NCBI RefSeq assembly: GCF_003704095.1
Contig: NW_020846166.1
Coordinates: 124,001 to 188,000 of the forward strand
Length of the DNA stretch: 64,000 nt
DNA from: Pocillopora damicornis
Taxonomy: Eukaryota
Direction: 5' to 3'
The notes below the pieces were generated by a model that ran no database searches, was not told the DNA's origin, and saw only the letters and a program-made list of their open reading frames with translations. How positions within the stretch are numbered: position 1 is the first letter of the stretch; every line of letters begins with the position of its first letter. Below are positions 22,166-63,542 of this stretch, piece by piece. The position numbers were made by a program, and so were the translations under genes.

Positions 22166-22374
22166 CTATCACACAGTCGGGAAAATAATTCATGTAGAAT
22201 TTATTTTTGTACGGAAAACCAGGTGCTCAAAATAATGCTTTTAATATTTGCACATGAAATTAAAAAAACTGAAATGAAGACCACATAAAAATTGAATAAC
22301 AAAAAATGATAATGAAATGGAAAAAATAAAAAAAGATACTATCACTTAGAGTGCGCCTTACGTTTTGTTTCGAC

Positions 22375-26092: not shown

Positions 26093-29000
26093 ATGGAATT
26101 CAGACCAACCTTGTTAGCCGCCTTCAGTCTTGCCTTAATGTTGGATTTCGTCAAGAGCGAGGATCCAATGTAAGTATTTTTTTGATGTCTTACATATTAA
26201 ACCTCATCTGCTTTGAGAGGTTTATTTCATTCAAATGTTTTACTTTGCATTTCAGTTGTAAAAACATGATAAGTGTTTCACTTACAAATCCCCTTAACAG
26301 TGTGCGTGCACGCTAGTTTTTGAACATAGTAACTCGTCACAGAAAACCCGTCAAGAAAGAAATTTTATCAGCGCACATACGTCTGAGTGTCTGTTTGTTA
26401 GTCCACGATCGTTATCTTTCCTTTAGACCAAGGGTAGAAGTGCACTTTGATTCTTCGAAAAAGCGCTTTATCCTTGCAGTTATCATCTCGATCGGGGAAG
26501 TTTACAAAATTTTCGTACAGCTGCCGCTCGAAGCAATGCAAGGATTGTGCAAGTTTAGAATAGTCTTGTGCTTAGCTAATTTCTCTACTTCAATCGAGGT
26601 GATGAAAACACCCTACATATAACACCACGCCTTCTCTTGTATCTGTTTCAGTTCAAAATAAATCAGCCACCTGCACTCCAAATAAAATAGTTTTTTAAAC
26701 AGAGAAAACAGCATCTATCTTTAAACGAAAAACCGTAGTCGTCTTCTTTTGGTATTCGTTACAACAATATAAAGTATAAAACCCGATGGATATTTTGTTA
26801 AGTGCCATTATCGATAAGAAATTTCGAAAACGCATTTTCCACATATTAAACCTTTTTGCTTTTGTGCGAGGTATTGAATTAACCTATGAGCAAACGGAAT
26901 TATTTCTCTCAGGGAAAAGTACAAGAAAACGATGGAAGAGGCATACAATTTATCGGTGGCGATCAACAACAATTTGAAGAATTACGATAGAAAGTTGCGG
27001 CCTAATGCTGGGGGTAAGCGTTGAATTTGTATTTGAATTTTTAACTTTGAATTAGTACATGGTAGTTTACTTCACCTCGAATATATTCAACCATGCATGC
27101 ATTTCTCATCTTGTATCTTCGCCCTCTTATTGAAGCTTTCTTGATTTACAAACTGCTGAGAATACAGACAAGTCTTTTGTAAGATTTTAACTCCACATAT
27201 CATCTGAATTGAGAATAAAATTTATCATTTGCTAAATATTCGTGCAGGAGAGCCGGTCATGGTCCAAGTAGAGTTCAAAGTTATTTCATTCGGTGAAATT
27301 AAGGAGGTGAACATGGTGAGTTGTTGTTGACTTTAAAGTTTCTCCATTGAGGATAAGATAGTCTGTTCTGATTGCTACGCGTTGCAATGTCAGTATTATA
27401 TTTCTGTAGCATTTATCTTCCGCGCCTTTATTTTGCCCTTCCGCCATTTTTGAACTCAGTGGTTCGTCTTTCATAGCATCGGATTACATTGTAAGCAAAT
27501 CACCGGTCAATGGATATTTTCTAGTATACAACCCAAACTTAAAAATATGCATGAACCACTTTTGTAAAACAGCCTTGAGATAACGTACCTGTATGGTACA
27601 AGTTCTTGAGGGTCGGCACAACTTGGGATATCGACTCGTATCGATTTCTTCGACGTAGGATATTCTTTGTTGGTAAGTGGATACCAGTGGAAATCCTGAG
27701 CCGTGGAATTTGCTAGTAAAGACAGTTCGTCGCGAAAACATACACAATGCGAGATATACATACCATAAGCAAAAGCAACTTGGTAAGAATTGTCCTCAGA
27801 AAGAGATCCATAAGGGGCACTTCTTCTCTCAGCTTTGGTCTCTCTCACTTTCAAGTCATAAAGCAAACAGGCAAACAGAAACTATGTTACACTCCGTTTA
27901 TTGACCGGCTGTAAGAGAGCACATCAAGAGCTAAAAAACTATATCATGTTTAAGTAATATAGGGCCGAATGACATGTACAAAGGAACTAAACAACGAAAA
28001 GTTGATAGAATCAGTAGGTCATTTGACTGAAAATGAAAAAAAAAGGTTAAATAGAATATGATTTTAAAATAGCATCCAAATGTTAATTTATTTTCTATAA
28101 ATTTTATCAAAGAGGAGCGGTTTCACTTCAAACTACTGATGGTGGTGTTTATAACAAATTTTAGGAGTACAGCATGGACATATTCTTCCGCCAGTGGTGG
28201 AAAGATCCCCGAATGAGGCATAATTCTACTACTCCATTTAACATGGCGTTTGACCCAACAAATGTCTTCTGGACACCGGATACTTATTTCTGGAATGTTA
28301 AACATGCAAAATATCACTACGTTACCAGAGAAAACATGCGGGTCAGAATTTCTGCAGATGGAGAGATATACTTCAGTACGAGGTGCACATAGAGTTTTTG
28401 TTCATTATTTATCAGAACACGTGTTTTTTGTTAAGGGCTATACGTATACATTGTCAAAATTAATTTTGAATTTTTTTGGAAGGCAGTTATTATCGTGTCG
28501 AAGGAAGAAGGCAAAGTCTGTTCTTAAGCCCGGTGGCCCTCACTACGTAGCAGCTAATTCCTGTTACCATCGCATGAAGCGGCTGGGATTATTTTTTTCC
28601 CAGTGGATAGTGTGCTAGTCCATACATCGAAGCTAAGCCCCTCACGCGGTTTTTTTTTAAGGAGGGGGAGGGAGGGGGTAGATAGGGTTTTTGCAGTTGA
28701 CTGGTTGTGGGATAATCACAATTTATCCTCAGAGTTGTGTCAGGTTTTCCTGAAAATTTACCAGCATTTTGTTACGCTCTTTATTCACCCTGGGTGAATA
28801 AAGTATCTTTCTCAAGAACACAACTTTACGACTTATTAAATTGCAAAGGGCGATTGAAAAGTGACAACATGACGATCTCAGCCAAGGCTTGATGATGTCA
28901 ATACTTCCAAGACGAGGAGTAGGAAGAGAAAAGTCCAAATTAAAGAAACACGTTTTTCATCACACAAAGGTTCAACTGATGAGATGAAAAGTTGGCTTTT

Positions 29001-31529
29001 GAGCGCTCTCAGTATAGTCGGTCGGAGCGCAGGAAAACTTTTTATATCCACGTCCAACAAACTCCTTTTTTATTTTCTCTAATATTATGTTCTGTTGCAA
29101 CACCCAGAGGAAAAAGTTTACTTGGTACAATATCTATGTTATTTGTTTTGTTAGGATAACGATTGTGGCTCAATGTGACATGGATCTGCGCCTGTATCCA
29201 ATGGATACCCAACACTGTGCATTGAGACTCGAGAGCTGTAAGTATGGAAATGGACCAGGTGCAGAGTAGCGGAAAATTTGCTCCTTAACTTTCGCTACTG
29301 CGAAGTGTTTAATTTTTTCCATTTGACAGTCAGACTATTGTTACAGTGCTGAGTTTCTTCTGATGATTTATGTGAATTTTTTTTTTTTACTATTTTGTCC
29401 CTTATGGGGCTTATAGCAAACTTCGGGTCGAAATATCAAAGGTAATCACGTAAGATAATTAAGCAAAATGAGTCAGATAGTGAGGAATCGAAAAAATTAT
29501 AAAAGATAACATTAGACTGCCTTAATCTTAAGGAAACGCGCACACCAGATAGCAAGTGGTTTTCTTTTGTTTCTAAATTGATGAAAGTGTATTCACGAGG
29601 CTCAAGCGAAACATATGCAAAAATGCAGTACGAATCTTCCTTTCACCGATTGCAGTTCTCGCCGATTGTGGTTCTAAAAAAATTACCCGGCCAATCCTGT
29701 TTCTCTGTTTCTCCTCAGATGCCCACACAGTGGCAGACGTAGACTATAAGTGGAAAATTGGTAAAAATAAAGGGATCGAGATTGTCTCCTCAGAGTTGGC
29801 TCAGTTTGATCTTCTTCGCGTTGTGACTGAGAATAAAGCAAGCACTAATAGCAAAGGTGAGATAACACATGTATTCTTGGCGCATATCCCCTTATTACCT
29901 TAACTTTTCCCAGTGAGGACCGAGGGGAAGGGGAGGGGGAGGGAGGGTCTAGCCTTCTCAGCTTATCATTGCATCCTCTGCGTGAAATACCCAGCCAGGA
30001 AGTCTGCTTCTACCATATGCGAGACAGTGGCTTCTCTTTACCCACCCAAAAATCTCTTTTAGTGCTAAGCTCTAATCTATGACAAACCATTTTCCACTGT
30101 TTAACTTATAAAGAAACTAAACTTGTGATATTTGCTCTCTATCCTTAAAAATCTTGAATCGGTATATTGGAATTTTATCAATGGCCGCATGGTTACTTAA
30201 CGCATATTTGACTCATTCGAATAGGTCTCTATAGTGCCTCACGTATTCCACGAGTAACAAAGTTACTGATCCTCTGTTATTCCTTTTCCACTTCAAACAA
30301 CTCTGTTATTTCTAACTATTTTAAGTATTTTAAGTATAAAACAGAAGTACACTTAAATGGCGTCCATGGTTTTCTTCGCTCAGGTTCATTTGCCAAATTA
30401 GTAGCGGTGTTCTCCTTCAGACGTCGTCTTGATTATTACATTTCATCCGTGTACGTACCGGAAGTCATCTTGGTAGTGTTGTCATGGTGCACGTTTTTCA
30501 TCACACCCTCAGCTGTTCCGGCAAGAATATCTCTCAGTATCACAACTATTCTGACCACCATCCTACTATCCAGCACCTTAAATTCAAATATTCCAAAGGT
30601 AAAACGCACGGAAATTGCTTACTCGGGGCTGTTATTTAACCGTGTTCTGACCCATGCTCATCGAGACGTTGATTTTTACCAACAATGTCAAGTATGCTTA
30701 TCGCTAGCACGAGAAAAGAATGATTCATCTCAAAAAGATATGCATAAAACATTTCTATGACAATCGTACATCTTTAAATAAACCTCGTTCAATAACTGGC
30801 CTTTAGCATCTAGAAGTTAAGCCCTAGAAAATGTTAGATCATACGACCAAGGGTGTGTGTCGGACGAAAGTCGTTCCCAGGCTGTAGTAATTGTTAAACT
30901 GTTACTTTTAAATTTTAGGTCAGTTACATGAAAGCCGTAGACTACTTTATGCTAACGTCCTTCGGCTTTATCTTCACGGCTCTGGTGGAATATATTATTG
31001 TGCTGAACACCCCTGAGGCATTTTCAGATAGTTTCAACTGCTTCGAGAAAAAGCAGAAGAATGAACCAGTTCAAGTTCAGGTAACTTCTGTTCAATGCTG
31101 TCCTTGAAATAACACCAACGAGTTAACTCATTGGCATAAATTCGGGGTCAGACAGTTTTATTGTGATCTTGCGTTACAAACTTCGTCTTACGCAAGCTAG
31201 ATCCCCGGATTCTTCTTTTGCTGCCGTTTTGAAAAAAGCTTTTATCTAGCACGTGTAAGGAGGAAGGATTGGCACATTTTGTCCTTGTGCATAGTTTATG
31301 ACCTGTTTAGTAAAAATTGTGCTTATTGCAGGACGGACCAGAGGAGTTGATTCTTAAAATCAATGCCTCCCCGAAGATGCTGGACCTGAGCAAGCCCAGG
31401 AAACCTCCTGAAACTAAACCGAGCCCTCCCAAGGATCACTGGGTCGACAAATGTTCCCGTATCCTTTTCCCCGCGTTTTACGCTCTCTTCCTCATGGCAT
31501 ATGTCATACATTACAAGAGAAAAGAGTGA
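26093..31529 (+). CDS. Cys-loop ligand-gated anion channel subunit A (GABA-A/glycine receptor-like, putative glutamate-gated chloride channel), about 419 aa
   Basis: Nine GT-AG exons: 26093-26169, 26913-27013, 27248-27315, 28165-28382, 29155-29237, 29719-29856, 30384-30598, 30919-31080, 31332-31529. Signal peptide, YDRKLRP, WTPDTYF, Cys-loop CDMDLRLYPMDTQHC, M2 PARISLSITTILT, PKVSYMKAVD, M4 VDKCSRILFP. Confidence 0.93.
28520..28825 (+). mobile_element. Degenerate SINE-like interspersed repeat in an intron of subunit A
   Basis: catgaagcggctggga...gtgctagtccat...caccctgggtg...aagtatctttctcaagaacacaac resembles a common anthozoan SINE body (recognition only). Confidence 0.4.
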
Positions 31530-33703
31530 GGGAAGGCTCCTGGGACTGGTCGTCTAATGGAATGTTGTCAGTCCAGGAGTAATTCGTGGTTATCTGTCTT
31601 CATAACTATACGGAGTACTCTTTAATTATTTAAACAAATCAGCATTACTTTGCAGTCATATTCGAATCTTACAGCTTACAGTCTTCGCGACGTAAAATGA
31701 CGCGAAGAATCATTACTGCTACGCGAAAGTTTGAAAGTTTGCATTATCTGTTCATATACATATGATATGCAATATTTATTTTGGTAGCTGAATTGAATTG
31801 CGTCGAGGCTTGCGCTCTTGTATGAAAAACTCAGGTAAAAATTGTACGTGCTCTGATGACAAACTGCAGCCTTTGCAAGTGCAAGTGCGACAATGCTAAT
31901 ACAGTGTACAATGAATATATAATTATTGTAATAAAATGATTAGAGTAATATTACTCCTATCAATAAGGAGAAATGTTCGGGAAATCGGCCAGAAAAACTT
32001 GAAAATGATGGTTATGGCCGCCGTGAATAGATTATGCAAATTTCAGCTGATCTTAATTAGGCGAGAATGCGACCTTTGGAATCAACGTAAAAAGAGCTGT
32101 CGAAGATCTTATTCCTCTCGCAAAGCAACGTTGAAATCCTCCGTTCGTCTTCAATCATAAATATCTTAAATTCAACAACGAACTGCTTCTTTTAAGAGCT
32201 TCGAAAAAACCTCTGCCTTTTGGAGAGTGGGAGTTGAAACAATTTTTTTTTCAGTAGCTTAACATATATTTAACACTAGTCTTGGTTTCTCTCGACATTC
32301 GTAAAACAGCTTTAAGCCCTTCAATATATTGAAGGACCTCTCCCAAATCAATAGCTCCAAAATAAGCATATACTCCATATACGTAACACTAAATTTACCT
32401 ACTGAGTGGGTTTATGTGTCCATCGTAATGATGCGGTAAGAACCAAATAAACTAAATTCATATCTGTTATTATCGCTGCCCAAACTCTCCTTATCATGTT
32501 ATCAATAAGGACTATTTAAACCAAATGATATTTAAAACTTCATCAATCGCAAATCTACTGACTATTGTCGTATTTACAAACCAAGACCGTTGGCTGGCAA
32601 ATCAATTTTTATTAATGTCATGTTTTTTTTTTTGTTAACATGATAAGAATTCGTGCGCTTTTCTTCAACTGAGCATACTGTAATAATTACATCAGGAAGA
32701 AGCCATCTATTTATCATGAATACATATCTTGATTAATGATTCATCTTATAAAGAGTAGAAAGTCTAGGATAGATACTTATTGAAATTGTTTATAAAAGGG
32801 TTAAAAAGGCAGGAACAATAATGTCAATTCCTTTACTCGAGGAGATGATTTGGTATTTTATCTTTGCTCTTTTTAAGCTTATCCAGAACACCGTGAACTA
32901 AGTGAAACCCCTTTCATCATCTTTCTTCCAGGATGACAATCTACACCATACGTAGAGAGTCTTTTTATCAGCAATGAACTTTTCGGGTACTTTTTTATCA
33001 TTTAAAGATACGTTTGTCACCAATGATTATTCAAAAAAGAGCTCAGGAGGTAGGATCTATAACATTAATCGCTTTTCTTGAGAAACCCAATTTTCTTTTA
33101 CATTGAATGAAAAAAATTGGATTCCTTAAGTTAGCCCTGCATCATAAATTATCAGTCCAGGCCCCCTACATCAAAATTGCCTTTTTCTATCAATCCCCCA
33201 ATATTCTTCTATAAACCATATCAGATTCTCCGTGTTAGACACTAAATTTAAAGTAGGACACTCATCACACGCAAAGAAACTCTTTGTCCCTCGCTTTTAA
33301 GAGTTCTAATTGTCTTATCAATTGTAGTGGAAAGAAAGGTAGACGAGCGGATTGGCTAATATCAGTATGATAACTATTCTGATTCCCAATAGAAACCTTA
33401 GCCAGGGTGACCAGGGATTTGCTTCGAAATCCAGATGGGAATCTAAGTTTTTCTCAAGAGTGTTTTACCCTAAATTCGTGCTTTTTGAAACTGCATCGTA
33501 AAACTCGTTTTTCAAAATCGGCATTGTTTTAATCGGTTGGTTTTTGTGCTTTGTACGTCAAAGTGGGCCGATTCTGATACAGAAGGAATTATCGACTTTT
33601 ATCTCATATCTACAGTTGTTCAAAAATGAATGGAAAGAAATTTCTTCACATTTTATAGATAAATATCGTTGAAGACTCCACCGTAACTTTCTTGTTGAAT
33701 TCT

Positions 33704-36700
33704 CTAGTCCAACACATGTCCCTTGGAGTCGCTCTCCTCCCTGAGCGCACTGTAGTATATGGTGTACGCGACGAGAAATGTGACGTACAAAGTTGGGAAG
33801 AGGAATCTTGACAATCGGTCGATCCAGTGCGCCTTAGTTTTTGTTGCTACTGGCGGCGTTAAGGGAAGTTGCTGTTTTGGTTGTGGCTTCAGCTTGATAT
33901 TTCCCTTGTTATTCCTGATTCTACAAACTCCTTCATCCATCACTTGCACAATCAGATCAACACTTCCCTTGCTGTGTGCCTACAAAGAAGAGAAATCTTT
34001 CTTTACACTTTGATCACCGGGATTTTTGGTCATTGGGATTATCACAACCAGGAAATGTGGTGTCAGCTTATATAAAGTGATACATAAAGCGCTATGATTG
34101 GATTATATGAGGAAAAAAAACATTTGACGGCCAGAAATACATCGACATGACCAAGCTTTGAAAGCCTTCAAGGCTAGCTCAAGAGTTTCCTTCTACTATT
34201 CTTTTAATCCCTTCATAAGGAAATTGTTTCCAGCCACCTGATTGATAAACAGAGCTCATTAGAGACCAAAAAAGCCCACAAATTACTTCAACAAAAAAGT
34301 CCACGTTGGAAAGTCTGGGAGTAAAATTACAAAATATTTGAAACTTCCGACAACCTGATCTTACGTAACGAATGATAATAGGAATCCTCTGTACATCTGC
34401 CAAACTGAGGGCAATTACAAATTATTCAGCCGTGCCGTAACCGTTCAATAGAGAGATAAGAGAAAATAGTCGTTTTTAAATGATTAAAGTTGAGGATAAT
34501 CTTTTCTCTCTACCACTTACTTCACATTCCATTGCAATTTCCTTTTTGTCTCCTCTTTTGTCCTTCTTGAACCAGGAAGGTGGAGAAAACACTGGACTGG
34601 TGTTGAGGACGATGATGAATTCGATTAAGGCGGCGAAGATGAAGCCAAAAGAGGTCAGCAAGAAATAATCAACGGCTTTCATGTAGCTGACCTTAGGCAT
34701 GTCTCTGTTAACGTTGCCTTTGAGTAGAATGGAGGTTAAAATAGTGGTGATACTCAAAGCCACTCTGGCAGGAACAGCTGAAGGGGAGATGAAGAAGCAA
34801 CACCACGACAAAACAACCAGGACTACTGCTGGGACAAATATGGCAGAAACAAAGCTCTCTGTGCGCCGTCGAAATGAAAACACCGCCTTGAGACTTGCGA
34901 AGGAACCTAAGAATGTTTGTAGGAAAGAGAGTCGTTTGATACACACTCGGGCTTCGCTACAATTCTCTAAAATTGGTGCATTTCTTCGTTTGGTCTTTAG
35001 TCTGTTAGCTAGCATTATTTGGCACAGTGAAGAGAGCCAAACTTAATTACTTAAGCCTCGCCCTCCTATTCAAAGTACTTTTTTTTATCTCCTCATGTCG
35101 TTCTCCTCAGGGAACTCGTTGGTGAAATAAACGTTCCAAAGAATAGTTGTTAAACTTGAATTTCTACTTTTCAATTTCTCAAGCGCAAATCAACGTTTTA
35201 TCTCAACTTTTGCGAATTGGATCACTCCTCGGTCCAGTTCTGAGGATGATCCTATATTTATGTCTTGAAAAGCCCCCTTATCTGTATCATTTTTCGTCCA
35301 GTTATGTAAAAGATGTTGTAAGAAAGAATTTGTGAGAGATAAAGTACGGTTAGTCTCACCTTGTTGCCTCGAGTATTATTTATACTATCTAAAAATTACA
35401 TTAGCCTCAAAATAAAACGAAAAAGAAAACTCTGTACAACGAAGAAAAAGTACAGGAAGAAAGTTTCTAGAGAAACCTCATTATTACACTGGTTTGATAC
35501 CAAGTGAAGCTCGTTGCTTTTGTTCGTACAGATATGAGAATTACGGCCATTCCACTAAGTTATACCGTCCACTAAATTTTGCTCATGATTTTATCCGCTT
35601 TATTTTTAAAACTCACCTTTACTGTTCGTCTGCGACTTGGTGTAAGTTTTAACATCAGTCAGATCAAACTGAGCCATTTCCTTCGACACTATCTCTACAC
35701 TTTGTTTATCTCCTCCCTTCCAGCGGTAATCAACATCTGCTGTCGTATACGCATCTAGAATGAGACGAAATAAAAAAAAAGTAAAAAGAATCACAGTGGA
35801 CTTTGGCACAGTCCAGTTGATCTGTACGGATTCGATTCGTATCAGAAGAACTGTAGGACAAATTTCCACATATAACAATTGTCATAAAGAGAGAAATGGC
35901 TCGGGAAGCCGCACTAGCATGCAGGAAGTTGCATGTGTTCCAAAATTACTTCGGATTATGTGGTTTGTTAACAAAAAATCTTGTCTTTGGTTGCTGTGCC
36001 GTTGAATACTTACAGCTTTCTATGATAAGAGGACAATACTGAGTGTCCATTGGGTAAAGGTGCAAATCCATATCACATTGAGCTGTTAGTGTTATCCTGG
36101 GAGAACAATAACAGAAAAGGTCTCAAATAACAATGTTGATCCTTCTGCTCTAAGGAGCGACCCAAAAGTACTTTCTCCTTACAAAATCAGTACAAGTTTA
36201 TGTAAAAGAGAACTGAGGGGAAAAGAAAGGTATTGACACGGGGACATCATTCGATTAAACTCCAAACTTAAAGGCTAAAATAAAAGTTAATGAAGAGGTT
36301 TGGCAGATAGAGCGGGAGTTGAAAGAGTGTATTTAGATCTTGCGATTAAAATTGAGGCGGACATAGAATGAACTTTTTCAAGACTGAAATGAAATAGTTT
36401 TGAAACTTTCTCTAAGAAAAAGATGCAGAATCGTCAGATCATCGTTGCTGCGAGTTGGAATTATTTTTCTTTTGTTTTTATTAGTGCAAATTTACCTTGT
36501 GCTGTAATAAATCTCCCCATCGGGCGATATTTTCACTCTCATATTCTCTCGGGTGACGAAATGATATTTAGCATCTTTTACATTCCAGAAGTACGTATCT
36601 GGAGTCCAGAAAAGCTTTGTGGGATCCGCTGCCATATTGAACGGTTTACTATAATTATTCTTAAACCTTGGATCATGCCACCATTGTCGCATAAAAATGT

Positions 36701-37767
36701 CCATCGAGTACTCCTAAAAGACAAAGAACGTACACTTCACTTTTCAATCAAGACTTTTTGGGAGCAAGATTTTCTTATTCCCATAAATCATGCTTTTGTT
36801 GTATCGAAAAAGCATAAATTGTTCCTTGATTTAAATCAGGAGTGGCTGATGTCATGGTTAGTTACCTGGGGATTTAGTCGCTTTTAGCTTCCTCGGCTTA
36901 GGTTTACTTGTTTACTCGGTAAAATGGTGATCAGTTTTCTTCACCTACAGGAATACGTTATATTATAAACTTAACTTAAATGCACGATCTTTGGATCTGC
37001 TGTTATGTAATTTAGGCCCTTAAGTCAAAATATGCGACCCTAGTGAGGATAATACAGGCATACCATATTAGCTTCCTTGATTTCTCCAAAGGATATGACT
37101 TTAAATTCTATCTTCACGATGACAGGAGGTCCCCCTGCATTTGGCCTGACTTTCTTGTCATAACCGGTTAGACTACGGTTTATCGAGCGCGACAAGTTAT
37201 AAGCTTCAATCATGCTACTTCTCACTTCGCTTGTAATTCTGAAATCAATAAAAAATAATTTTTCAGGAACATTCTTACCTACGAAGGTAACAATTTATTA
37301 CACCTGGTCTCAGTGAACCTGATAAAGGACCAAATCCTCTGAGAACTTCAATAATATTTTCCGTAAGCACTGTAGCAAATTTTATAATCCCAAATAGCCT
37401 CTAGGAAAGTGTTCTTGTACATTCTGATGATAAATAACTATTAGTTGCGTACATTTCCGTGTTAAGAGAATCAATATTCATTATGCTAATATGCTTAAAC
37501 TTATTCTTTTAAATAATTGAGTTTGGTATTTTTCATAAGCCTACAGTGTACTATTTAGCTGCTAAACTAATTTTGAGGCGGTGTGGTACTCTGCAAGCAT
37601 ATTTATCTTTGTCATAAAAGCTAATAGAAAACTATTTTATTTTCAAAAACGAGAATTATAGGACGAGGTAGATTCATCCTTAAGACTTACTCTTTACCAA
37701 GCCCGTAAGCAACAAGACTGAGGCACATCAGAAGAGCTGCAGCTATTCGAAGACATGAGGTTGCCAT
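33704..37767 (-). CDS. Cys-loop ligand-gated anion channel subunit B, about 450 aa
   Basis: Seven exons: 37691-37767, 37064-37238, 36496-36713, 36014-36096, 35617-35754, 34521-34906, 33704-33979. Cys-loop CDMDLHLYPMDTQYC, M2 PARVALSITTILT, M4 IDRLSRFLFP. Confidence 0.93.
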
Positions 37768-39169
37768 CACGGATATGTCACTGCAATGAGTAGAAAGATG
37801 TGAACAACCTTTTCTATCAAGCAAATTGTTTGCGTTCGAAATTTCGTTTGTTCAAGTTATATATTAGTTAACTACCTATTTTGGTTATTTTGAAACTTTT
37901 CTCATTAGTTTGAAACTCCTAAAAATATTCTTCAGATGGATGAAATGTATTTTCTCGTGTGTAAGCCATTTTTTAACCTTTGTCTTGGCTACGGAGGCAG
38001 CTAATGAGCCACTTCGTATGATAGCGTCCCAAATTTTTTCTTTTTGTATTCTGTGGTATTGGGACGAGGGAAATAACTTTTAAGTTTCTTCTTATTTTTC
38101 TTTATATAATCCTGAAATTACTTCTAATACTTACATAATTGATTGAACCAGAAAATCAGTCAAGATTTACGGTAACTGTAACAGCAAAGCTTTCCTCATC
38201 TATGATTTCTCGGACTAAAAACTATCGATGAATGGGGTATTTTCGTCGTTTCTTCTAATTCTAAATGTTGCCAATTATCAAGGTGAGTATATCCCCTGGA
38301 GATATATTTACGTTTTTGTATTTATCTGGAAATTTCCACCTGCTTTTAACCCGCAGCAACGCGGATGGGGTATCTGTGGTCTCCCTTTGAAAACAACTTC
38401 CTTTCTTTAACACTTTTGTTGATAATATTGCTTTGTGTTAGATAAGGTATGGTTATAATCGAGCGTTTGGGTGCTGCAGTAATAAATTTAAAATTTATTT
38501 TGCTAATGTTATCTTTATTTCTGTCTATGGATATCTTGATAAGAGATAAAACAAAATCGCGGCTACAGGTTTTGAATACGATGCGGGTTTGCGGGATATC
38601 AAACAATAACTGTGAGCTTCAGTGTTATTGTTTGGCAATCATGCTAAATGTTTCGTGCACGTCTTGAAAGCGTCTGCTGCGTCTTTTGCTAAAAAAATTG
38701 ATTTAACGCCAAAAAAAAAAAAAAACATAAAGGCAATTTTAATGACAAGACAAGAACTAACGTGGGGCTAAAAGGTAACATCGATTTCAAGCTGAAAGAC
38801 AGTGAAGATGAAATATGAAATCAAAGTTCAAAGCCTTTATTAAATACCTGTGAACTTGCTTCTCTCTTTCAGTTCCAAAAACTCATTTCATTTGTTTACA
38901 ACTCTTTATCAGGCTGGCAACCGTGCTCAGTGCCCGCACAATCCACTATACATTCCAAAACGAAAATAATAGAAAATGACATATCTATCTAAGATTGTTT
39001 CTTTCGAATTGAGCACAAAATTACCTCTGTTCTTGATTATGTCAGCTAACTTTAAAACTTGTGCATTTTTTGCTTTTAATTTACTTATATAACACAAGAT
39101 GAGCCGTTCCATCATTTTTTCATCACAACCTCATCTCAAAAGTGTCCTACATTTGCATCTCCACATCCC

Positions 39170-39228
39170 CAGCCACACCATGCTGATAAGGCCTAATATG
39201 GCCGAAAGAAACGGTTGTCTCTGGCTGC
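39170..39228 (+). ncRNA. Degenerate hammerhead-ribozyme-like motif
   Basis: CAGCCA...CTGATAA-GGCC-TAATAT-GGCC-GAAA...GTC-TCTGGCTG. Stem II is perfect and the flanks pair (CAGCCA/TGGCTG), but core G8 is mutated to A and GAAA is duplicated. Confidence 0.5.
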
Positions 39229-40869: not shown

Positions 40870-41175
40870 TTGTTGGCACGGTGTTATTAAAGTAGAGGGA
40901 ATGATCCGCAACTTTTTGAGATTATTCAAGTAGCATGAAATAAACTAATTTCAGAAGATTAAAAAGTTTGGTTCACCCATCGTGGCGTTAAACTTTAAGA
41001 TACTTGTTTCTCAGATGAAGAATGTTTGTCAGCACGGCGTTATCGAAGCAAATAGAAAATGTTTTTTGCAGTTCTTTTAAATATGTTAAGAACGAGAAAA
41101 TAAATCAATTTCAGAAGATAGAAAATGTTTAAGCTCACCCACCGTGGTGTTAAACCTTAGGACTTTAGTTTCTCA
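40870..41175. repeat. Diverged tandem duplication, two units of about 150 bp, between subunits B and C
   Basis: Both units read gcacgg.gttat..aag...aaataaa..aatttcagaagat...tcaccca.cgtgg.gttaaac.tta.ga...gtttctca. Confidence 0.8.
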
Positions 41176-50100: not shown

Positions 50101-51600
50101 TTGCGTGCTGGAGCCTACTTTACAAACCACTGAATATATCATAGTTATAACTGGACTTTCCAATTGCCTTGTAGAATCGATTTGAATTTTATTTATCGAT
50201 TTCGAGTCATTTTCTTTTGAGGAATAAAAGCAACTTCGTTTAAGATGTAGTTTAACGTCATTTGTGTTTTCTGGCAAAAACCCGTTTCTTTAACTACAAA
50301 AGACGATTGGGTAAAACTGCCTCAACAATTGCTTGAAAACAATTCCGGATGCCTAGAAGACTCGGTATTAAATTTACTGTGTTGAAAAAGCAGATATCCA
50401 TTGATCCCAACGAATACGAATGAAATGATTTGCAGTCTTATTTAATATAATAGAGAAATGATCACAATGTTAAGAAAGAAAACACTTCCAAGATGTGTTT
50501 CTTAGACCATTAACATTTTACGGAAACCTCTGCGAATCAAGACTCGACACGCTAAGCTGGTGAAAATTTAAAGCCTTTAGTTTAACCACCAAATTCATTA
50601 CATTGAAAAATTCATCAAGTCGTGGTAAGTTTAATTTTTCAGATTTGCAACCACAGCAAAGAAACCCAAATGCAAACTTGAACTCAAATATTGTATTTTG
50701 TCAACATATTCGTTTCACAAAACAGCTTAGCTTTAATCTGAAAAGACAAATCTCGTAAAAGATTCTTCCTTAGATTGGCTTTTTACCAGCAAAGCGATGT
50801 TTTAAAAGATCTTCGATCTGCGAGGAAATAAGTTTAAAACTGTATTGGTTCGCTTGCTATTTACTATACTGATTGAGGTAAATCGCTTAGCGCCTTAGGC
50901 GTTCGAAACAATGGTTGTGGTGGTGGAAGACACGATTTTCTATCTTCTCTTACGGTGAATAGGAATTACATCTCAATGATACATTACAGATATCGTAGTT
51001 ATACGCAGTTGGTAAAACGGCCCGTATTTTGTCGTCGTTCCCTACCGTCTAAGTTCGTCAAGGTTTACTGAAAACAGAAAATATGACTCAGGAGGATATT
51101 TGCATAATGTGGCAAACAGAAAAGAAGCCAAAACTATCTCGCTGTCGGTCAGACTGTGGTATCTTTCAAAACATTTGAATCATATGGCTTTGAATGCTAT
51201 TTTTCGACTAAACAGTATAAAAATTCTGTCCAGTGAGCATTTGGGCAATGTCTTTTGTTGACATTCTAGCTTTAAGAAACCTGGTTACCAAGAAGTATAC
51301 CGCGATATTTTTTTTGCAGTCTCTTAGTGGAATTGCTGTGATGATCCGCTGTGTGTGATGACAATTTTCTTTAACGTTTTGTTATCAAAGCAGGAGTAAT
51401 TTGCATTTAAGGGTTATCAACAATTTTGCCAATTATGCATGGGTGCTTTTCGCGGTCATCGTGTAAATAAATCGCCAATTGATTTGCGTAAGAAAAATAA
51501 GGTTTTTCTACCGTTTTTCCCTCTATTCTTTCTTAAAACATCCTCGTGTTATTTCTTTATGTTAACAGGTCTTTGAAGTCAGGACTTAACATCGACAAAC

Positions 51601-54600
51601 ATGAGGTTTCCGTCGACAATATTATTCTGGATGACTTTAGGAAACGCTATTTGGAGATTGGCTGAAGCAGAAGAAGAAAAGTAAGATATTATTTCATTCC
51701 GTTAAACTTTTCACACGAGCCCTTACGAAAAGTTATTTTCAAACAGTATTATGTGTAGGAAAATGTTCTGTGTTCCCTGCTGGTATATGATAAGAAAATA
51801 ACCGACTTATTCGGCCATACATACTTCGCCATTGGGGATAAGAAGGAAAACATAGAGTTATGATATTTCCTCATATCTGATCTGTAAGGAGTACGTTGAT
51901 TAGCTCTATTGTAAGTAATCACAACCAGTTCCTCTTTTTGCCGACCTCTGCCACAGTTTGCCTTCTCAAGTGCGATGATCTGTTCTTCGTAAATAATATA
52001 TGTTTGAACGGCATGCAGTATTGATCTTTTTCAAGCTGATATTGTTGTACAGAAAGCCACTAATATTAACCATAGCAAGTGAACAGCAATGCCAGTAAAG
52101 GGCAAGACAAATAAAAGTTTTAATGAAGATGAGTTCAAGCGGCTCGGAAAAAACCCTTTATTCTCCTCTCTCACATCGCAACAGGGAATCCAGGCCCTAC
52201 TTTAAATAAACGAGTTGCACTTAATAGGATAGGAAGTGCAGACGTTTTTAGACGCCGATGGCGATCAAAGTCCCCTTACAGCAATAATACGGGAAGTTCC
52301 TGTTTTTGCATTTAAAACGAAATAGCACAAACAAAAGATACCTGTCATGTCCCTGGAAAAGAAAATTTGAACTTCCTGTTACCCTTCTCCTCTCAAAAAC
52401 ATCGTCACAGAAATTCAGTTTCATAATATCCTGCCCACCTACGACTTCAGCCCGATGGCAATTCATATAAAAACGACCGATGCACTAATTAGATGCACCT
52501 GATGTCGGCAAAAGATCATTGTCGTGTGCTTACATATGCTGCCATTAAAACAAGATGAAATAGAATAAGTTAAAATCATGTAAAATGAAATAGTATAACA
52601 AAATCAGTTAAAAAAAAATGGAGTTGGCATCACCCTTAAAACTTATTTAGATCCAAGAACATTTTATCTCTGTCCTTAACTCTACTATGTGCTGTGATTT
52701 AATTTCAAATATGTTGTAAAATTTACCATCTGAATGAGCAAATTAATAATTTGATCGATAATTAGATAGATCCATGAATGATTAAAGGCAAAGTTTTTTA
52801 AGGAGCCTTTATTCTTTGTCAAGGGCTCTTATGAGAAATAAATGAATTAAATGATTTTCCGACCTGTTGATGCAACCACAGGCGTCCCAAGCTCACGTGG
52901 TGATGCTACCAAATGAGGCATTGATCCTCAAAGGTAAACTTCATTTGACGGAATTACCGAAGAGAAAACGAAGCTTGAAAAAACTGTGGCCTCGATGGAA
53001 CACCAATAACGTTTACCTTGTCATCATTATGTGTCCAGGTGTTCGAAACACATCTAAGCATGAATTTACTTCAGACTTTTCTTTATGTAATTTCGTAATT
53101 GCATTGCCCCTGAAGGGAAAACTTTTTAATTCATTATTTTTACATTTACATATTGAAAGTGACCTCGAGGAGCAACGCATGTTTATGATTTTTTCGCGTT
53201 TTCCATGATAGGTCCCTTAAATATTATGAAAAGTCGATGGAAGAGGCCTTACAGCTTGCCAACAAGATAAATGCTGCTTTAGCTGTGCATGACAAGAAGG
53301 TTCGACCAAACGCTGGAGGTAAGAAGATAAATCAGGAGACATGTTAATCTTTAAACGAAAATCACTGATAAAATAGATAAGAAAAAAAAAACCCTTCAAA
53401 CTAGACAGAAGTCGGGGATGCTTCCATAGGCTGTAGTGATTTTTTCCTCCAATCCCGATAAGGGAATGGATGAGCTTATTGATTCAGATGAATAACTCTT
53501 AAATTGTAAGACATAGTAACCGATGTTTCTCCATTATACTCTACTGCACACTAAGACTTTCACTGAGCCACATGGACTAATTCTCTCTCTCAGGTCCTCC
53601 TGTAATGGTTGATGTAGAATTCAAGATCATTTCGATTGGTGAGATTAAAGAGGCTAGCATGGTAAGAGATAAATCTACTATAGGATGGAAAGGTTTTTGA
53701 TATCAAAAGAGTGAATTAAGAATTTAGAATATGTAAATTGACGAATAAATTATTTTATCCCCTCTGAAAGGAATACACAATGGATATCTTCTTTCGTCAA
53801 TGGTGGGTTGATCCAAGGCTGGCGCACAATTTCAGCACTCCTTTCAACATGGCAGGGGACGCTACCAAGTTGATTTGGACACCAGATACATTTTTTTGGA
53901 ATGTAAAAGCTGCCAAATACCACAAAGTAACAAGGGAGAACATGAGAATCAAAATCCACGGCGATGGAAAAGTGTATTTCAGTACGAGGTAAGACTAAGT
54001 TCCGGGCTCAAACAAGTTTCCCAAGAAGGTTATTGGTTTTTTAATATTTCAGTGCTAAAGCTGGTTTTCCTTGTTTTGAATGCAGGATTACCTTTACGGC
54101 TCAGTGTGATATGAATCTTCGCTTGTATCCAATGGATATTCAAGTTTGTCCATTGACCATTGAAAGCTGTGAGTAGGATGTTTCAATCTCTAACGACCAG
54201 GATGACTTCATCAGTTGCTTTTAATGAATTCTGATTCTCTTAAGAGAAGTGACTGCAATTAAGAACCCGATTGTTGAATAGATGTTGATACACCAATTGT
54301 TACTCACCTTTCACTATTCATCACTAGATGCACATACCACAGCTGATGTTGATTATCGATGGAAAGGAGGAAAGTCACAGGGTGTTGAAATCGTCTCTAA
54401 AGAAATGGCCCAGTTTGAGTTTGTTGGTGCGAAAACCTCAACCAAAGCAAACACCAATAGTAAAGGTAAGATAGGAAAAGCTAAATATTTTGCGAAATAT
54501 CGTTGAACCATGAAAATAATCCACATGAAAATTAACATTCTTGGCTTTACGATGAAACTGAGTATTTTGATTTTAGCAGTGATATTTTTTGTTCAAAGAC

Positions 54601-56433
54601 CGGAGGCAAATCCGATGTATTACATTCCTTTCCTCTTCAAACTTGAAATGTATTTAAAAAATTTTGAGAGTACTCCATAGAAAAATAAAATAGGAGAGTT
54701 ATTGATTCATTGAAAACTGTGCTATCCTTTGTTTTAAGGTTCTTTTGCCAGCCTGCGGGCATTTTTCACATTCAAGCGTCGCGTGTCGTACTTCATCACA
54801 GCGACCTACATGCCTGCTATGGTCCTTGTGATCCTCAGCTGGTGTTGCTTCTGGATCACCCGCGCTGCTGTACCAGCCCGAGTCACCCTCTCCATAACAA
54901 CAATTTTAACCACCATACTACTCTACGGTTCGGTCAATTCTAATATGCCTAAGGTAGTTACTCAGTTGTCAGACAAGTGAATGAATTTGCATCTTCAGCC
55001 TAAGGAATGTCGAGGGCGTTAAGCTGTGCCATTGTATTTTAAATACTATCGAATTCAGTATCTTTTTGAAAGTCCTCTTGTTGGAATCAGAAATATTTTT
55101 TGTTGTTAACAAGGAAGGGTGTGGTTTGGGTGGTAATCTTGGGTCTGATTTATGAAGGTTAGGCTTGTCGCTGTCTCACCATAGCTCAGATTCTTTTTCT
55201 TCTTTTTCTGGATTATTCCGTTTTTCTTTCCCAAAAATAATTCAAAGTGTCAAATTCTAGTTCAACCTTGCTTCAAACAAGCGTTAAAAGCTTTTCAGCT
55301 CTTAAGCTCTTCAGTGAGTGAAAAAGCTACTTTATTTTGTGCTTGACAGAAAAATAAAAAACTCTGATGCATACTTCGATAATTTGTTCCAAATTTTATT
55401 CCAATTTTTCAACAGGTGAGCTACAGTAAAGCCATTGACTACTTCCTCATGACATCATTGGGATTTATCTTTATGTCACTTCTGGAGTTCATTCTCGTCC
55501 TCAACACGGATCCACGCTTCTGGACTCAAAAGCGAAGAGAGCAAAAGGCTGAAAAATTGAAGTCACTTTACAAAGTAATGACCTAAGACAGCTTGTCAAT
55601 ACTGCATTCTGTAAGGCATTGTTAAGTGCTCGGAGGCCATCCATAAGGCCGCCCTATTTGCACCTACTTTAGAGACATACGCTTTAGAGAAATTTGCTCT
55701 TTTTTCTTAACCCTTTCACCTGTCAGCTGGAAACGAACGGCATGAAAAAGTTTGAAAGATGAACAAAAGGGTAATTGTAATGCTATACGAATCATTAAAA
55801 ACGTTAAGTGGAAACTGGAAATAACTGTTTTTAAAAGGATTTGAAATCTTTCACAAAAAGGGACTTGTAGGAAAGCATTTGGGATTGTACATACAGCTAA
55901 TTGACGCGGTTACTGGTATTTTCGATGGATAGCAGTGCCAACCATGGCAAATGGACAACCACAATTCATTTATTATCATTTAGTCTACTCAGTTTGTCAG
56001 AGCTTAATGATGCAAAAGCTAAAACATGGTAAAATGCCAAACCTGACGGCGGCGTCGTGCAAACTATTGCTTCTTCATTTCATTTTTACTTGGCAGAAAA
56101 ATAACGTAGAAAAGAAAAAATTGGTAATGCAATATCGTTTTATTTATCACTCAGGAAACTCCAGCCGAGACTGTTGTCACGCTCATGGACGGCAAGGCTA
56201 AACCAACCGATATTCTTAAGGAAAGCACAGACATGACTCCTCTTAATGGCCCAACCAAAGAACGTGAGAAGGATCCACCAAAGGCACCAGAAGCACCACC
56301 AGCTGCCAAGACCCATTGGATCGATTACGTCGCTCGTATTCTTTTCCCCATTGTGTACTTTTCCTTTGTAACCTTCTATTGGATATACTACATTAACCAT
56401 CCTGAGTCAGCCATGGGTGGAGTTACTGAGTGA
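51601..56433 (+). CDS. Cys-loop ligand-gated anion channel subunit C, about 448 aa
   Basis: Nine exons: 51601-51680, 53212-53318, 53594-53661, 53771-53988, 54086-54168, 54328-54465, 54739-54953, 55416-55574, 56155-56433. Cys-loop CDMNLRLYPMDIQVC, M2 PARVTLSITTILT, M4 IDYVARILFP. Confidence 0.93.
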
Positions 56434-58021: not shown

Positions 58022-58195
58022 GGGTAAATTTCTGAAGAAACTTTGGTGCTGCGTCGGTGGTAGAGTATAACAAGGTAATTTCGTAAATTGGCCACCGAAA
58101 AGAGTTTCAAAGCTCACCTTTCGAGCGTTAGCCCTTTGTAAGAGCGAATGTTACGTTATCAACTAAGTCGATAATACCAAATTACCTTGTTATTA
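58022..58195 (-). repeat. Diverged copy of the same element with an internal inverted repeat
   Basis: gaagaaactttggtgctgcgtcggtgg...ttcgagcgttagccctt; ataacaaggtaattt is mirrored by aaattaccttgttat. Confidence 0.75.
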
Positions 58196-60422: not shown

Positions 60423-63400
60423 TTAGAATGGTGCTTGATCTACAAAGTTACGCCAAAACAAAACAAGGAAGGCAATGTAACTGGCTGGGAAGATAATTCG
60501 GGAAATTATGTCGACCCAGTGGGAGCTGATTTTTTTCCTCTTTTTAGGCGGGTCTTTATTGATAGGTTTGACCTGAATCTTGCCTTGATGCATTGCACCC
60601 GTGTTATCGAATAACATCACTGTAGCTCCTTGGCCTCCGTTAGAGACCACTACTCGCTGAGTAAGTGTGTGACCACACCCTCCCACGTGGCTATTTACTG
60701 CGGGTGTACTAGTTTCAGGGGAGTGGCTGATCTCAGCGTCGATGAGTTCTGTATCTGGCTCAGTATTGGAGCTATTCTGTGAAGAAATTGAAAGATTACT
60801 TTTTTAAGAAACAAAATTAAGAAAAATACTGTACAATCACATTTAAAAGACTCCCCCTATGGGTTTCAAGCTAGTGATAAACTTGCAAACTAATCAAAGT
60901 TCGATGTGCTCGTGTTTGAACGAGGGAAATTAACTAGCTAACTAACATACCAATTAAGCATCTAAACAAACACATAATCAGCCAAGTGACCTAATGAATG
61001 ACTAACTCAGAACTCAACAAATGCTTAGTTAGTTTACTTTATAATTAACTGATTGACTGACATACTGACGAGCTTACTAATTTACTGAATGGCTAACTAA
61101 TTAATTATCTAACCTATTGACTTACAAACTGAGAGATTGACTGATAGGTTAACTTACCTTTGAGGTTCGTGAGGCACGAAAATACAAAGGAAATATCACA
61201 ACATAAGATATATACAGATATATTTTTACCAAAAGGTGATGCTCGACTGAGTCTGACTAGTGGAGAATGGAGATGCAGGTTATTATGCATTTGTTTCCAA
61301 TCTTACTATGAGAAGAGATCGATTAGAATAAGGCTGCAGCGCCAGTGGCTAAGAAACTACAGACTAATGCATACCTCAAAGATACCAGTCACAACAAGAA
61401 TCTAATAAAGATTTTTACCTCTTTCTCGCGTACGACATCCATAAGTTTTAGTGGCTGTTTTCCTCTCTATTTGTAAAAAAATATAAGGTATTGTGGTAAA
61501 CAAAAACATAACTTTTATGTAGTTCGCCGGTAAAAAAAGAACACTTCCAGAAATGAATAAAGTACATGATTAAGAGCAAGAAAACTAGTTGAGTTGATAT
61601 AAAAATTTGGTGATATTACCTTTTTGGGTCGTAATCTCAGGCACACCAAGAGACATTGTAGCCATTTAGGGTCAGGATCAGTGTTCAATACAATCACAAA
61701 CTCCAGAAATGAAAGGAAAATGAACCCAAAGCTGACTAGTAAGAAATAGTCTTGAGCCTTACTGTAACTGACTGGTGGCATGGCTTCGTTCACTGAGCCG
61801 CAAAGCACGATGGCTGTAAGAATTATTGTGATACCCAGTGACGCACGTGCGGGAACAGCATCACGGGAAATCCAGAAACAGCACCATGAGAGCATGACAA
61901 GAGTCACTCCTGGAGAGAAAACCGAAGAAACGAAATATTCCAGACGGCGTTTGAACGAGAATATAACGCTCAGACCGGCGAACGAACCTGCATGTCAAAA
62001 TGGAAAAAATACCACACGATGTAGTAAGAATTACGCATTCAAAATCAATGATTTCAAATGCAAACGAGGGATCACCGTGATTTTGTTTTCATAGCTGTTC
62101 AGAGGGGGATCTACGAGTCTCTTGTGATCCGCCATTGTTACGTCACACCACCTCGTCAATTCGAGGAAATTTATCCGAAAGAAAGGAGAGGAACTTAACT
62201 AAAAATTCATCAGCTTGATACCTTTGCTGTTCTTTGTGTCTCTTAGTTTCGTGTCTATGCCAGCCAACTCAAACTGAGCCATCTCTTGGGAAACAATTTC
62301 GATCCCTTTTCCTTTGTTTGCGACAGTTTTTCTCCATTTATAATCCACGTCATCAGTAGTATGAGCATCTGAAATGATAAGTAAATCAGTCAAACGATGA
62401 GGCATACTCATTAATTTCTCCAGCATTGCAAATTGTACTATTTCTAGAGTGTGATTGGTTAAGCAAAGAGAAACTGGAGAAAGATAATTACAATTTTAAA
62501 AAACGCAAGAGGGAGTCCTCGGTAAATATTTGGACTTCAAACCTCAAATCTCTCGATAGGATTCACCCTAAAAACATTGCGGTGAAGAGGGCTTGTTAGA
62601 AGCCTGGCTGTAAAATTATGCTGAGTTCTCAAACGATGTTACTTCTCCGAAATCGAAGTGAATATTCTCTAAAGAAGTAAATTTCAGAAAGAATAGGGCA
62701 TTCTTCTGCTTTTTATTCATTTCTCAGTTTGACTGAAAAAAAATTGAAGTAATCTGTAAATAATCTTTGTAATGTTTGCAAAACAAGATCAGACCACTCC
62801 AACTTTGATATCGAGTTACAGACGTACTCACAGCTTTCAATGATCAGAGGACAGTGTTGGGTATCCATTGGGTAAAGTCGGAAGTCCATGTCACATTGCG
62901 CCGTCAAGGTTATTCTGCAAAGAAAATGGAAACAGATATCACCAAAAGGTATTGAGAATATTTTGTTTGTCATTTTAGTTGCTTTGGCTAATAGAACATT
63001 GCATCTGAGGGCTCAAAATAATTTCTAAGAACATATCACTTTTGGCCTCCGTGAGGTACGTACTGGAGCGGAAGAAATATCCCCTTACATAATTATTCCG
63101 TATGTCGTATTGTAGCTATTATCACAATTTACCCCACTTTACTCTTCAAAAATTCAATAATTATTCAAAATATTTCCTGAAATTAGAAGTACTAGACTAA
63201 ATTACTCCTTCGCTTCCACCAGTTGGAATTTATTCGCCAAAATTTAAGCCTGCCCATCATTATTCTCGTGAATATCATATAGCTTCTAAGGTTCAAGTTT
63301 ACGGACGAAAAACATTTGCATCACCTTGCGCTGAAGTATATTTTCCCTGTGGAGTAAATCATGACTCGCATGTTCTCGCGAGTGACATAATGGTACTTTA

Positions 63401-63542
63401 TTCTTTTTACATTAAAGAAATATGTGTCCGGAGTCCAGAAGAGCTTGGAAGGATCTCCTGCCATGTTAAATGGTGTGCTAGAATTATGCCTGAACCTTGG
63501 ATCGTACCACCACTGGCGGAAGAAAATGTCCATCGAATAATC
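60423..63542 (-). CDS. Cys-loop ligand-gated anion channel subunit D, 5'-partial (first exons lie beyond the window)
   Basis: Exons 63325-63542, 62832-62914, 62222-62368, 61620-61987, probable 61419-61466, possible 61230-61256, and 60423-60776. Cys-loop CDMDFRLYPMDTQHC, M2 PARASLGITIILT, M4 VDIISRIIFP. Confidence 0.9.

Follow-up and report, generated by a model that had tools for sequence, protein, structure and literature searches.

Glutamate-gated chloride channels (GluCls) of cnidarians are described from the sea anemone Nematostella (Ojha et al. 2026, Adv Sci, PMC13335744; bioRxiv preprint July 2025; cited throughout for its main text). Most cnidarian GABA-A-like genes form a cnidarian-specific radiation, and when seven Nematostella subunits were expressed in oocytes, none of them responded to GABA or glycine at concentrations up to 1 mM. 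Three of the subunits, nvGluCl-1, -2 and -3, gave desensitising glutamate currents with half-maximal effective concentrations of 16, 102 and 7 μM, respectively. The currents are borne by chloride, as shown by the shift of the reversal potential with gluconate, and picrotoxin blocks nvGluCl-2. Aspartate, glutamine, histamine and beta-alanine evoked no current at the Nematostella pentameric ligand-gated ion channels (nvpLGICs). The work described here concerns a 64 kb stretch of the stony coral Pocillopora damicornis (assembly GCF_003704095.1, contig NW_020846166.1, positions 124,001 to 188,000, forward strand; hereafter the window), in which four genes, A, B, C and D, encode subunits that resemble these anemone receptors.

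In the binding pocket of the nvGluCls the loop D Arg is retained, as is the aromatic box apart from an Asn at the position of GABA-A beta F200. In nvGluCl-2, loop C reads N227-S228-K229, and the replacement of K229 by Thr, Arg or Met (K229T/R/M) abolished the glutamate response. Docking to nvGluCl-2 placed the second carboxylate of glutamate on loop G K74, and in one molecular dynamics (MD) run K229 bonded E72 while the ligand contacted N227 and S228. Three further Nematostella genes of the same group, clade XIII, retain both lysines. pLGIC-1 was directly shown to be homopentameric, and blue-native gels were also run for nvpLGIC-2. The nvGluCls are expressed in cnidocytes, tentacle neurons and retractor muscle (PMC13335744).

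When the 2133 stop-to-stop frames of the window were compared all against all by blastp, four sets of mutually similar frames were found at 26–64 kb, corresponding to genes A–D. Their exon 4 frames are 70–78% identical to one another. The genes lie on alternating strands (A +, B −, C +, D −) and form two tail-to-tail pairs over about 40 kb; they are the four intact Cys-loop type receptor genes of the window, with D continuing past its end. The preliminary description of this DNA had marked positions 26093–63542, which run from the ATG of A to the first base of D exon 4. The window was searched exon by exon, and full-length comparisons were made through database proteins. The best explanation, which we consider very probable, is a tandem array of four expressed genes that are coral kin of the anemone glutamate-gated chloride channels. 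Because the pocket residues are the same as in the glutamate-opened anemone receptors, A–D are probably glutamate receptors misnamed as GABA or glycine receptors. By sequence, A–D almost certainly are coral members of the nvGluCl clade, and B is likely to be a glutamate-gated chloride channel; that all four are such channels is proposed with less confidence than for B. The data presented here show the gene structures, that B is expressed and spliced, the signature of residues and the orthology to the anemone genes.

The pocket and pore motifs had been read from the letters in the preliminary description: loop G EFK(V/I)IS(F/I)GEI with Lys at GlyR F44 in A, B and C and the D exon outside the window, loop D RQWW with its Arg, loop E TRENMR with Arg near L117, loop C NSKGSF with the first aromatic lost and Lys at the conserved Thr, no loop C disulfide, and a PAR anion filter. 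Codon views and alignments bore out each of these readings. Loop G is EFKVISFGEI in A and B and EFKIISIGEI in C, with the E-F-K codons at 27271–27279 in A (+; Lys codon 27277–27279), 37100–37108 in B (−; Lys codon 37100–37102) and 53617–53625 in C (+; Lys codon 53623–53625). In HMMER alignments to solved chains, the Lys pairs without gaps with the F of NIFINSFG, which is residue 44 of glycine receptor (GlyR) alpha-1 (8dn2_D), and the B Lys falls at this F44 position. The loop G exon of D lies 46–114 bases past the window end (contig positions 188046–188114). It reads VEIKVVSFGEL (E-I-K), so the Lys is kept in D.

Loop C of all four genes reads NSK, followed by a Gly codon that an intron interrupts (G|GT), and then SF. 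The N-S-K codons are at 29847–29855 in A (+; end of exon 6), 35618–35626 in B (−), 54456–54464 in C (+) and 62223–62231 in D (−). The N-S-K-G-S-F of B pairs with F-S-T-G-S-Y of GABA-A beta-2, residues 200–205 counted from the Y159 anchor, and Asn, Ser and Lys thus align to F200, S201 and T202. No Cys was seen in loop C in the codon views of the four genes, so the second disulfide of the GlyR type is absent. Loop D RQWW is at 28189–28200 in A (+), 36678–36689 in B (−), 53795–53806 in C (+) and 63507–63518 in D (−), and loop E TRENMR is at 28324–28341 (+), 36537–36554 (−), 53930–53947 (+) and 63366–63383 (−) in the same order; the exon 4 core of B, from RQWW through loop A DTYFWN to TRENMR, spans 36537–36689 (−). 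The loop D Arg pairs with R65 of GlyR and the second loop E Arg with L117. In the protein of B, the loop G Lys is K72, the loop C Lys is K230, and the loop E arginines are R139 and R143. Loop B is E-S-Y-A-(H/Y)-T, and its Tyr codon is split by an intron. The Cys-loop C-x13-C is present in all four as QCDM(D/N)(L/F)(R/H)LYPMD(T/I)Q(H/Y/V)C. M2 starts with AVPAR in each gene, with P-A-R (−2′ to 0′) at 30518–30526 in A (+), 34764–34772 in B (−), 54873–54881 in C (+) and 61845–61853 in D (−), and Thr at 6′ and Leu at 9′ are also kept in all four. By AVPAR, A–D fit the anion-selective branch of the GABA-A/GlyR type, and anion selectivity is predicted. Shared with nvGluCl-1/2/3 of clade XIII (PMC13335744) are E-x-K in loop G, N-S-K-G-x-F in loop C, the Arg of loop D, the aromatic box except for Asn at beta-F200, PAR, Thr at 6′ and Leu at 9′. 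One difference is that the nvGluCls come from a sea anemone and A–D from a stony coral.

Glutamate-gated chloride channels have also been described in other phyla. According to the text of Lynagh et al. 2015 (PMC4338433), the Arg of ecdysozoan GluCls is in loop G, and that of lophotrochozoan GluCls is in loop A, on the opposite, principal face of the interface; the statement in the preliminary description that both groups use a loop G Arg at two different positions was therefore mistaken. Ecdysozoan GluCls (C. elegans GLC-1/GluCl alpha and H. contortus AVR-14B) are likewise anion-selective, and their basic loop G residue, on the complementary face, has been proposed to hold a glutamate carboxylate. 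Their Arg sits at the position of a GlyR Asn (AVR-14B R76N, PMC4338433), whereas this column holds Ile in A, B and C and Val in D, and the window Lys lies two residues upstream on the same strand. Ecdysozoan GluCls also lack the loop C Lys that A–D have. Since the two groups belong to separate clades (PMC13335744), the clade of A–D would represent a convergent solution. Lophotrochozoan GluCls (Schistosoma SmGluCl-2 and Aplysia GluCl) are glutamate-gated chloride channels of independent origin within the GABA-A/GlyR superfamily and use the loop A Arg of the principal face (PMC4338433). A–D have no Arg in WTPDTYF(W/F)N, the stretch in which the lophotrochozoan Arg column presumably lies. D has an Arg three residues further on (NVKR).

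The best solved relative of full-length B is GABA-A beta-2 (E 9.5e-74). A–D share with human GABA-A beta-2 and beta-3 the Cys-loop, loop B E-S-Y-x-Y/H-T, the loop A Tyr, and the Gly and final aromatic of loop C. Ala-Arg at −1′/0′ is also common with beta-2, which has Ala at −2′ where A–D have Pro. In the pocket, beta-2 F200 is replaced by Asn, T202 by Lys and the loop G Asp by Lys. With GlyR alpha-1, exons 2–4 align without gaps or nearly so and the equivalents of loop D F63 and R65 are kept, whereas F44 is Lys, L117 is Arg and the loop C disulfide is absent in A–D. A relative named glycine-receptor-like by NCBI (P0203) has Y-W-T-G at the N-S-K-G columns, where A–D have Asn and Lys; its Y and T are presumably equivalent to Y202 and T204 of GlyR alpha-1. 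RefSeq names A–D as GABA-A or glycine receptor subunits, and the naming agrees with GABA-A beta and GlyR alpha chains being their best solved relatives and with the retained aromatic box, loop B Glu and loop D Arg. However, that A–D work as such receptors is very improbable: the equivalents of beta F200 and T202 are Asn and Lys, the GlyR-type loop C disulfide is missing, and in the tree described below the clade stands apart from the deuterostome GlyR-like row as well as from the other outgroups. At up to 1 mM, neither GABA nor glycine elicited a response in any of the seven recorded receptors of the cnidarian radiation, the anemone kin of A–D (PMC13335744).

The combination of loop G Lys and loop C Lys (Lys/Lys signature) was searched for in the whole P. 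damicornis assembly (234.35 Mb, 4393 contigs). B exon 4 matches 29 places in the genome, and five of these carry the signature, namely the four cluster genes and a fifth paralogue. For 13 of the other 24 places, the loop G exon was readable within the 3.2 kb fetched; none of the 13 has Lys at the loop G column, where the residues are T, S, L, F, F, Y, Y, S, A, L, A, E and L. The Lys/Lys signature is not a chance feature of the superfamily. The fifth gene, on contig C2713 at 274962–279421 (+), has loop G IEFKLMAFGKI, loop E VSRDNMR and loop C ANTNSK, and its group also includes Nematostella XP_032238689.2 ('GABA receptor subunit pi') as well as Exaiptasia XP_020897107.1.

To collect relatives, B exon 4 was used in an exhaustive protein search, which gave 1749 matches at E ≤ 0.001 and 67 at 1e-10. 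Most of the 150 B exon 4 matches listed were short fragments, and the four full-length ones were used as bridges. A word search with one of these bridges, Acropora millepora P0008, returned 57 proteins, and every descriptively named one is called a GABA-A or glycine receptor subunit; the mislabelling by annotation pipelines that the preliminary description foresaw is thus general among the named relatives. Two alignments were made, one of 64 rows and one of 45 rows (32 clade rows and 13 outgroup rows). A quick tree used 59 of the 64 rows, with P0186, P0194, P0195, P0196 and P0201 omitted as isoforms or near-duplicates. For the 45-row set, unnamed Logan/JGI rows were omitted, partial proteins were replaced by full-length members of their clusters, and two Stylophora and three Oculina proteins were added; the careful tree was built from it with IQ-TREE under LG+C20, and the quick trees agree with it. 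Nematostella P0189 (EDO41538.1, partial), has no loop C NSK, which looks like a splice-site error of an old gene model, and RefSeq P0267 of the same cluster has NNSKGSF.

In the careful tree A–D fall within a Lys/Lys clade with support of 99/97. Each of the four genes belongs to a supported orthogroup of its own (A 100/99, B 100/98, C 100/100, D 92/94), and A and B are sisters (98/95). Every orthogroup consists of a stony-coral subclade and a subclade of Nematostella and Exaiptasia (and Actinia), so the four duplications predate the coral/anemone split; A, B, C and D pair one-to-one with four Nematostella orthologues. The clade has two further lineages besides A–D, the group of the fifth Pocillopora gene with XP_032238689.2 and an Exaiptasia/Actinia pair. 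The loop G E-x-K, the loop E T[RK]xxxR and PAR are each present in 32 of the 32 clade rows and the loop C NSKG[SA]F in 29 of them, and the three loop motifs (G, C and E) were found in 0 of the 13 outgroup rows. The two loop E arginines are conserved across the Lys/Lys clade. Protein P0026 of the scyphozoan Sanderia malayensis (EukProt), which reads ELK in loop G, TKDTMR in loop E and NSKGSF in loop C, falls inside the clade on a very long branch, and the signature may therefore predate the Anthozoa/Medusozoa split.

The connection of A–D to the nvGluCls runs through RefSeq proteins and residue numbering rather than through the cloned nvGluCl sequences. Nematostella XP_001635156.2 (P0174), in group B, carries E72, K74, Y155, N227, S228 and K229, which are six of the seven residue numbers given for nvGluCl-2. 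The identity to the Nematostella orthologues is 63.7% for B (P0174) and 55.6% for D, with A within 55.6–63.7%; for C it is 82.9% over a partial protein of 269 amino acids.

Several points weigh against reading A–D as glutamate-gated chloride channels. The seventh nvGluCl-2 number disagrees, S159 of the paper being R159 in P0174, and by residue numbering P0174 would be nvGluCl-2 or a near-identical isoform. The main text of Ojha et al. gives no accession numbers, and each of A–D is either an orthologue or a paralogue of the recorded nvGluCl-1/2/3. Only three of the six Nematostella clade members were tested there; K229 was shown to be necessary rather than sufficient in nvGluCl-2; and the role of K74 comes from docking, with K229 bound to E72 and not to the ligand in the MD run (PMC13335744). 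Since B and D are only 63.7% and 55.6% identical to their orthologues, they could differ from these in potency or ligand. All three exceptions to the loop C motif in the clade are anemone D-type proteins (P0159, P0270/P0158 and P0163), which read DSKTTF, PKSTSF and PKKTSF. The RNA aligned to the window consists of contigs and covers gene B only, and no recordings from a coral receptor of this clade were found in the literature.

The reading of A–D as coral kin of the nvGluCls leads to a proposed mechanism. We infer it, together with the ligand, ion selectivity and stoichiometry of A–D, from the published anemone work and from residue identity. Five subunits would assemble into a pentamer, and glutamate would bind at the subunit interfaces. 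Its amine would lie within the aromatic box that is retained (the Tyr of loop A, that of loop B and the Phe of loop C), beside the loop B Glu, and its two carboxylates would be held by the loop D Arg, the loop C Lys, which replaces Thr202 of GABA-A beta, and the loop G Lys of the neighbouring subunit. Asn would take the place of the first loop C aromatic, and the two clade-wide loop E arginines may contribute positive charge. Binding would open the pore, with its Pro-Ala-Arg filter, to chloride, and Thr at 6′ and Leu at 9′ are those of picrotoxin-sensitive channels. The preliminary description had suggested glutamate or another dicarboxylate as the agonist. Signature and orthology with the nvGluCls favour glutamate, whereas another dicarboxylate is less likely in receptors this closely related, since the nvpLGICs passed no current with aspartate (PMC13335744). 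The remark in the preliminary description that sea anemone GABA-A-like receptors had been reported to respond to glutamate through a pocket lysine was correct, as nvGluCl-1/2/3 and the essential K229 demonstrate (PMC13335744).

Although they belong to the nvGluCl clade, some of the four subunits, most plausibly D and perhaps A or C, might not be homomeric glutamate receptors; they might answer another acidic or zwitterionic ligand, or function solely within heteropentamers formed with their array neighbours. The paralogue types are ancient, having arisen before the coral/anemone split, and their pockets differ: gene B has Tyr as the second aromatic of loop B where A, C and D have His, the loop A Trp of A–C is Phe in D, and the residues at the third position of loop E are R, K, K and M. 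The NSKG motif is lost in the anemone D-type proteins, which may have shifted in ligand or role, whereas the coral D-type proteins retain NSKGSF, and in coral D itself both E-x-K and NSKGSF are complete. Of the seven cloned nvpLGICs, four answered no agonist tested; in contrast, all three tested receptors with both lysines responded to glutamate as homomers, pLGIC-1 homopentamers were shown directly, and aspartate, glutamine, histamine and beta-alanine gave no current (PMC13335744). On balance, it is unlikely that some of A–D are not homomeric glutamate receptors.

The order of the array, which would suit co-regulation of such partners, is kept in Oculina and, by consecutive accessions, in Stylophora. 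Linkage in other species was judged indirectly, from consecutive accession numbers or locus tags and shared scaffold lengths. The P. damicornis locus tags are pdam_00012376 (A), 12377 (B), (12378) and 12379 (D). In Oculina patagonica the genes are ACROYT_G005241 (A), G005243 (C) and G005244 (D); in Stylophora, PFX29235 (A), PFX29234 (B) and PFX29232 (D) share a scaffold; and P. meandrina has CAH3153384, 381, 378 and 375. These numbers suggest that stony corals have conserved the A-B-C-D array. In them the four types are packed closely together (about 40 kb in the window), whereas the Nematostella A-, B- and C-type models (EDO43090, EDO43093 and EDO43149) are spread over one 1.18 Mb scaffold, with A and B 3 accession numbers apart and C about 56 further; all five types were found on one record of 18,096,078 bases. 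It is conceivable, but rather doubtful, that stony corals kept the array because the subunits cooperate, either in heteropentamers or through shared regulation of a set whose members differ in potency or in acidic ligand. The D-type would then have a role or ligand distinct from the nvGluCls, and the loop E arginines would be further determinants in a pocket of up to five basic residues.

Gene A spans 26093–31529 (+) and has 9 coding exons for 419 amino acids (XP_027049650.1, 'GABA receptor subunit beta-2-like', pdam_00012376). Its blocks of complete codons are 26093–26167, 26914–27012, 27250–27315, 28165–28380, 29156–29236, 29721–29855, 30386–30598, 30919–31080 and 31326–31526. In the codon views, the ATG is at 26093, the donor is GTAAGT and the splice sites are GT..AG. 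The peptides match XP_027049650.1 (P0206) exactly in 8 of 9 exons and at 66 of 67 residues in the last, where the mismatch is at a split codon. Gene C spans 51601–56433 (+), with 9 coding exons for about 448 amino acids and a candidate exon 1 at 51601. Its nearest named protein is P. verrucosa XP_058958901.2 (P0175, 'GABA receptor subunit alpha-3'); exon peptides are exact in 6 of 9 cases against this protein and in 7 of 9 against P. meandrina P0234, and the remainder are off by 1–2 residues. Of gene D (496 amino acids overall; XP_027049638.1 / RMX41273.1, 'gamma-3-like', pdam_00012379), the 3′ part from exon 4 to the stop lies at 60423–64000 (−), and coding exons 1–3 lie past the window at the equivalents of 65992–66078, 64455–64574 and 64046–64111. 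Its peptides match P0250 exactly in 7 of 8 exons and at 117 of 118 residues in the last, again with the difference at a split codon.

Gene B spans 33704–37782 (−), with 7 coding exons for 450 amino acids (XP_027049644.1, pdam_00012377). The exons taken from RNA joints are 37691–37782 (ATG at 37767), 37063–37238, 36495–36712, 36014–36095, 35615–35754, 34520–34904 and 33704–33978. The coding exons total 1350 nt, or 450 codons, and P0219 contains each of the 7 exon peptides unchanged; B lacks the introns 2/3 and 7/8 that A and C have. RNA runs contain 28–41% of the words sampled from the 4.3 kb B locus. When RNA contigs over 33600–37900 were aligned, six joints were found, each in 3 or 4 of 4 runs from 4 studies and each GT..AG on the minus strand, and contigs of 1592–1595 nt cover the whole coding region. 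Being contigs, they show presence and splicing, not level. Several of them diverge upstream of 37780–37783 into at least 4 different 5′ continuations. This divergence suggests alternative 5′ untranslated exons and fits several RefSeq isoforms with one protein.

The full-length products of A, C and D are encoded on many contigs of transcriptome assemblies (about 2–5 kb). All listed C and D contigs (about 2.0–3.4 kb) are shorter than the gene spans of 4.8–5.7 kb; those of A mostly fall short of the gene's length, and the longest one listed (5404 nt) is about equal to its span of 5.4 kb. Pseudogenes are frequent in tandem arrays and the aligned RNA contigs concern B only, and one or more copies could accordingly be decaying non-functional duplicates. 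This is scarcely credible, as all exons are open, splice sites are canonical and annotated proteins match exactly or nearly; each copy also has orthologues in Scleractinia and Actiniaria with the signature conserved, and the A, C and D products stand full-length on the transcriptome contigs.

Domain searches agree with the gene models. Pfam PF02931 (Neur_chan_LBD) was found on 6 of 7 pieces of the ligand-binding domain (exons 2–5), with 41.9–49.9 bits for the four exon 4 pieces and 27.7 for exon 5, while the exon 2+3 piece reached 24.1 bits, below the cut-off of 26. PF02932 (Neur_chan_memb) was found on both M1–M3 exons searched (76.2 and 81.4 bits), and the exon 6 and exon 9 pieces searched singly had no Pfam match. 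In precomputed Pfam results both domains are present in full-length P0175 and in P0178 and P0169, the cluster representatives of P0206 and P0219. The Pfam matches place A–D in the Cys-loop pentameric ligand-gated ion channels.

The receptor family itself is already published for the sister lineage, Nematostella (PMC13335744). The main text of that paper does not mention a tandem, a gene cluster or loop E; its figures or supplements may already show Stylophora orthologues of A–D in clade XIII. The additions made here beyond that main text are small and incremental: the orthogroups, the array, the loop E arginines, the scyphozoan member and the scale of the misnaming. Judged from residues and orthology, the newly described class of inhibitory glutamate receptors would extend from one sea anemone to reef-building corals, with exact gene models for four coral members and a fifth elsewhere in the genome. 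RefSeq and UniRef names such as 'GABA receptor subunit beta-2-like', 'alpha-3', 'gamma-3-like' and 'glycine receptor subunit beta-like' are misleading for the whole clade, whose members come from Acropora, Montipora, Porites, Oculina, Stylophora, Pocillopora, Exaiptasia, Actinia and one scyphozoan. Transcriptome studies that took these genes as coral GABAergic signalling should be re-read. The channels formed by A–D are also candidate targets of chloride-channel pesticides. In the text of a study on Acropora larvae, fipronil was the most toxic of three insecticides, and coral chloride channels were proposed as its target (PMC7394062).

The rest of the window is AT-rich eukaryotic DNA (GC 0.33–0.40) with two runs of N, at 471–695 and 21849–21905. 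Between B and C (37900–51600, about 13.7–13.8 kb), no remnant of a pLGIC or receptor-like frame and no open frame above 173 amino acids was seen. Upstream of A, the frames that flank the N run at 21849–21905 (21613–22226) share 55–60% identity, which points to a local duplication or repeat across the run. At 140–14643 (−) and 17020–17424, frames of about 100 amino acids with a mutual identity of 30–60% stand in tandem; they are unrelated to the receptor cluster, and a PAN/apple-like frame lies upstream of those at 140–14643 (−).

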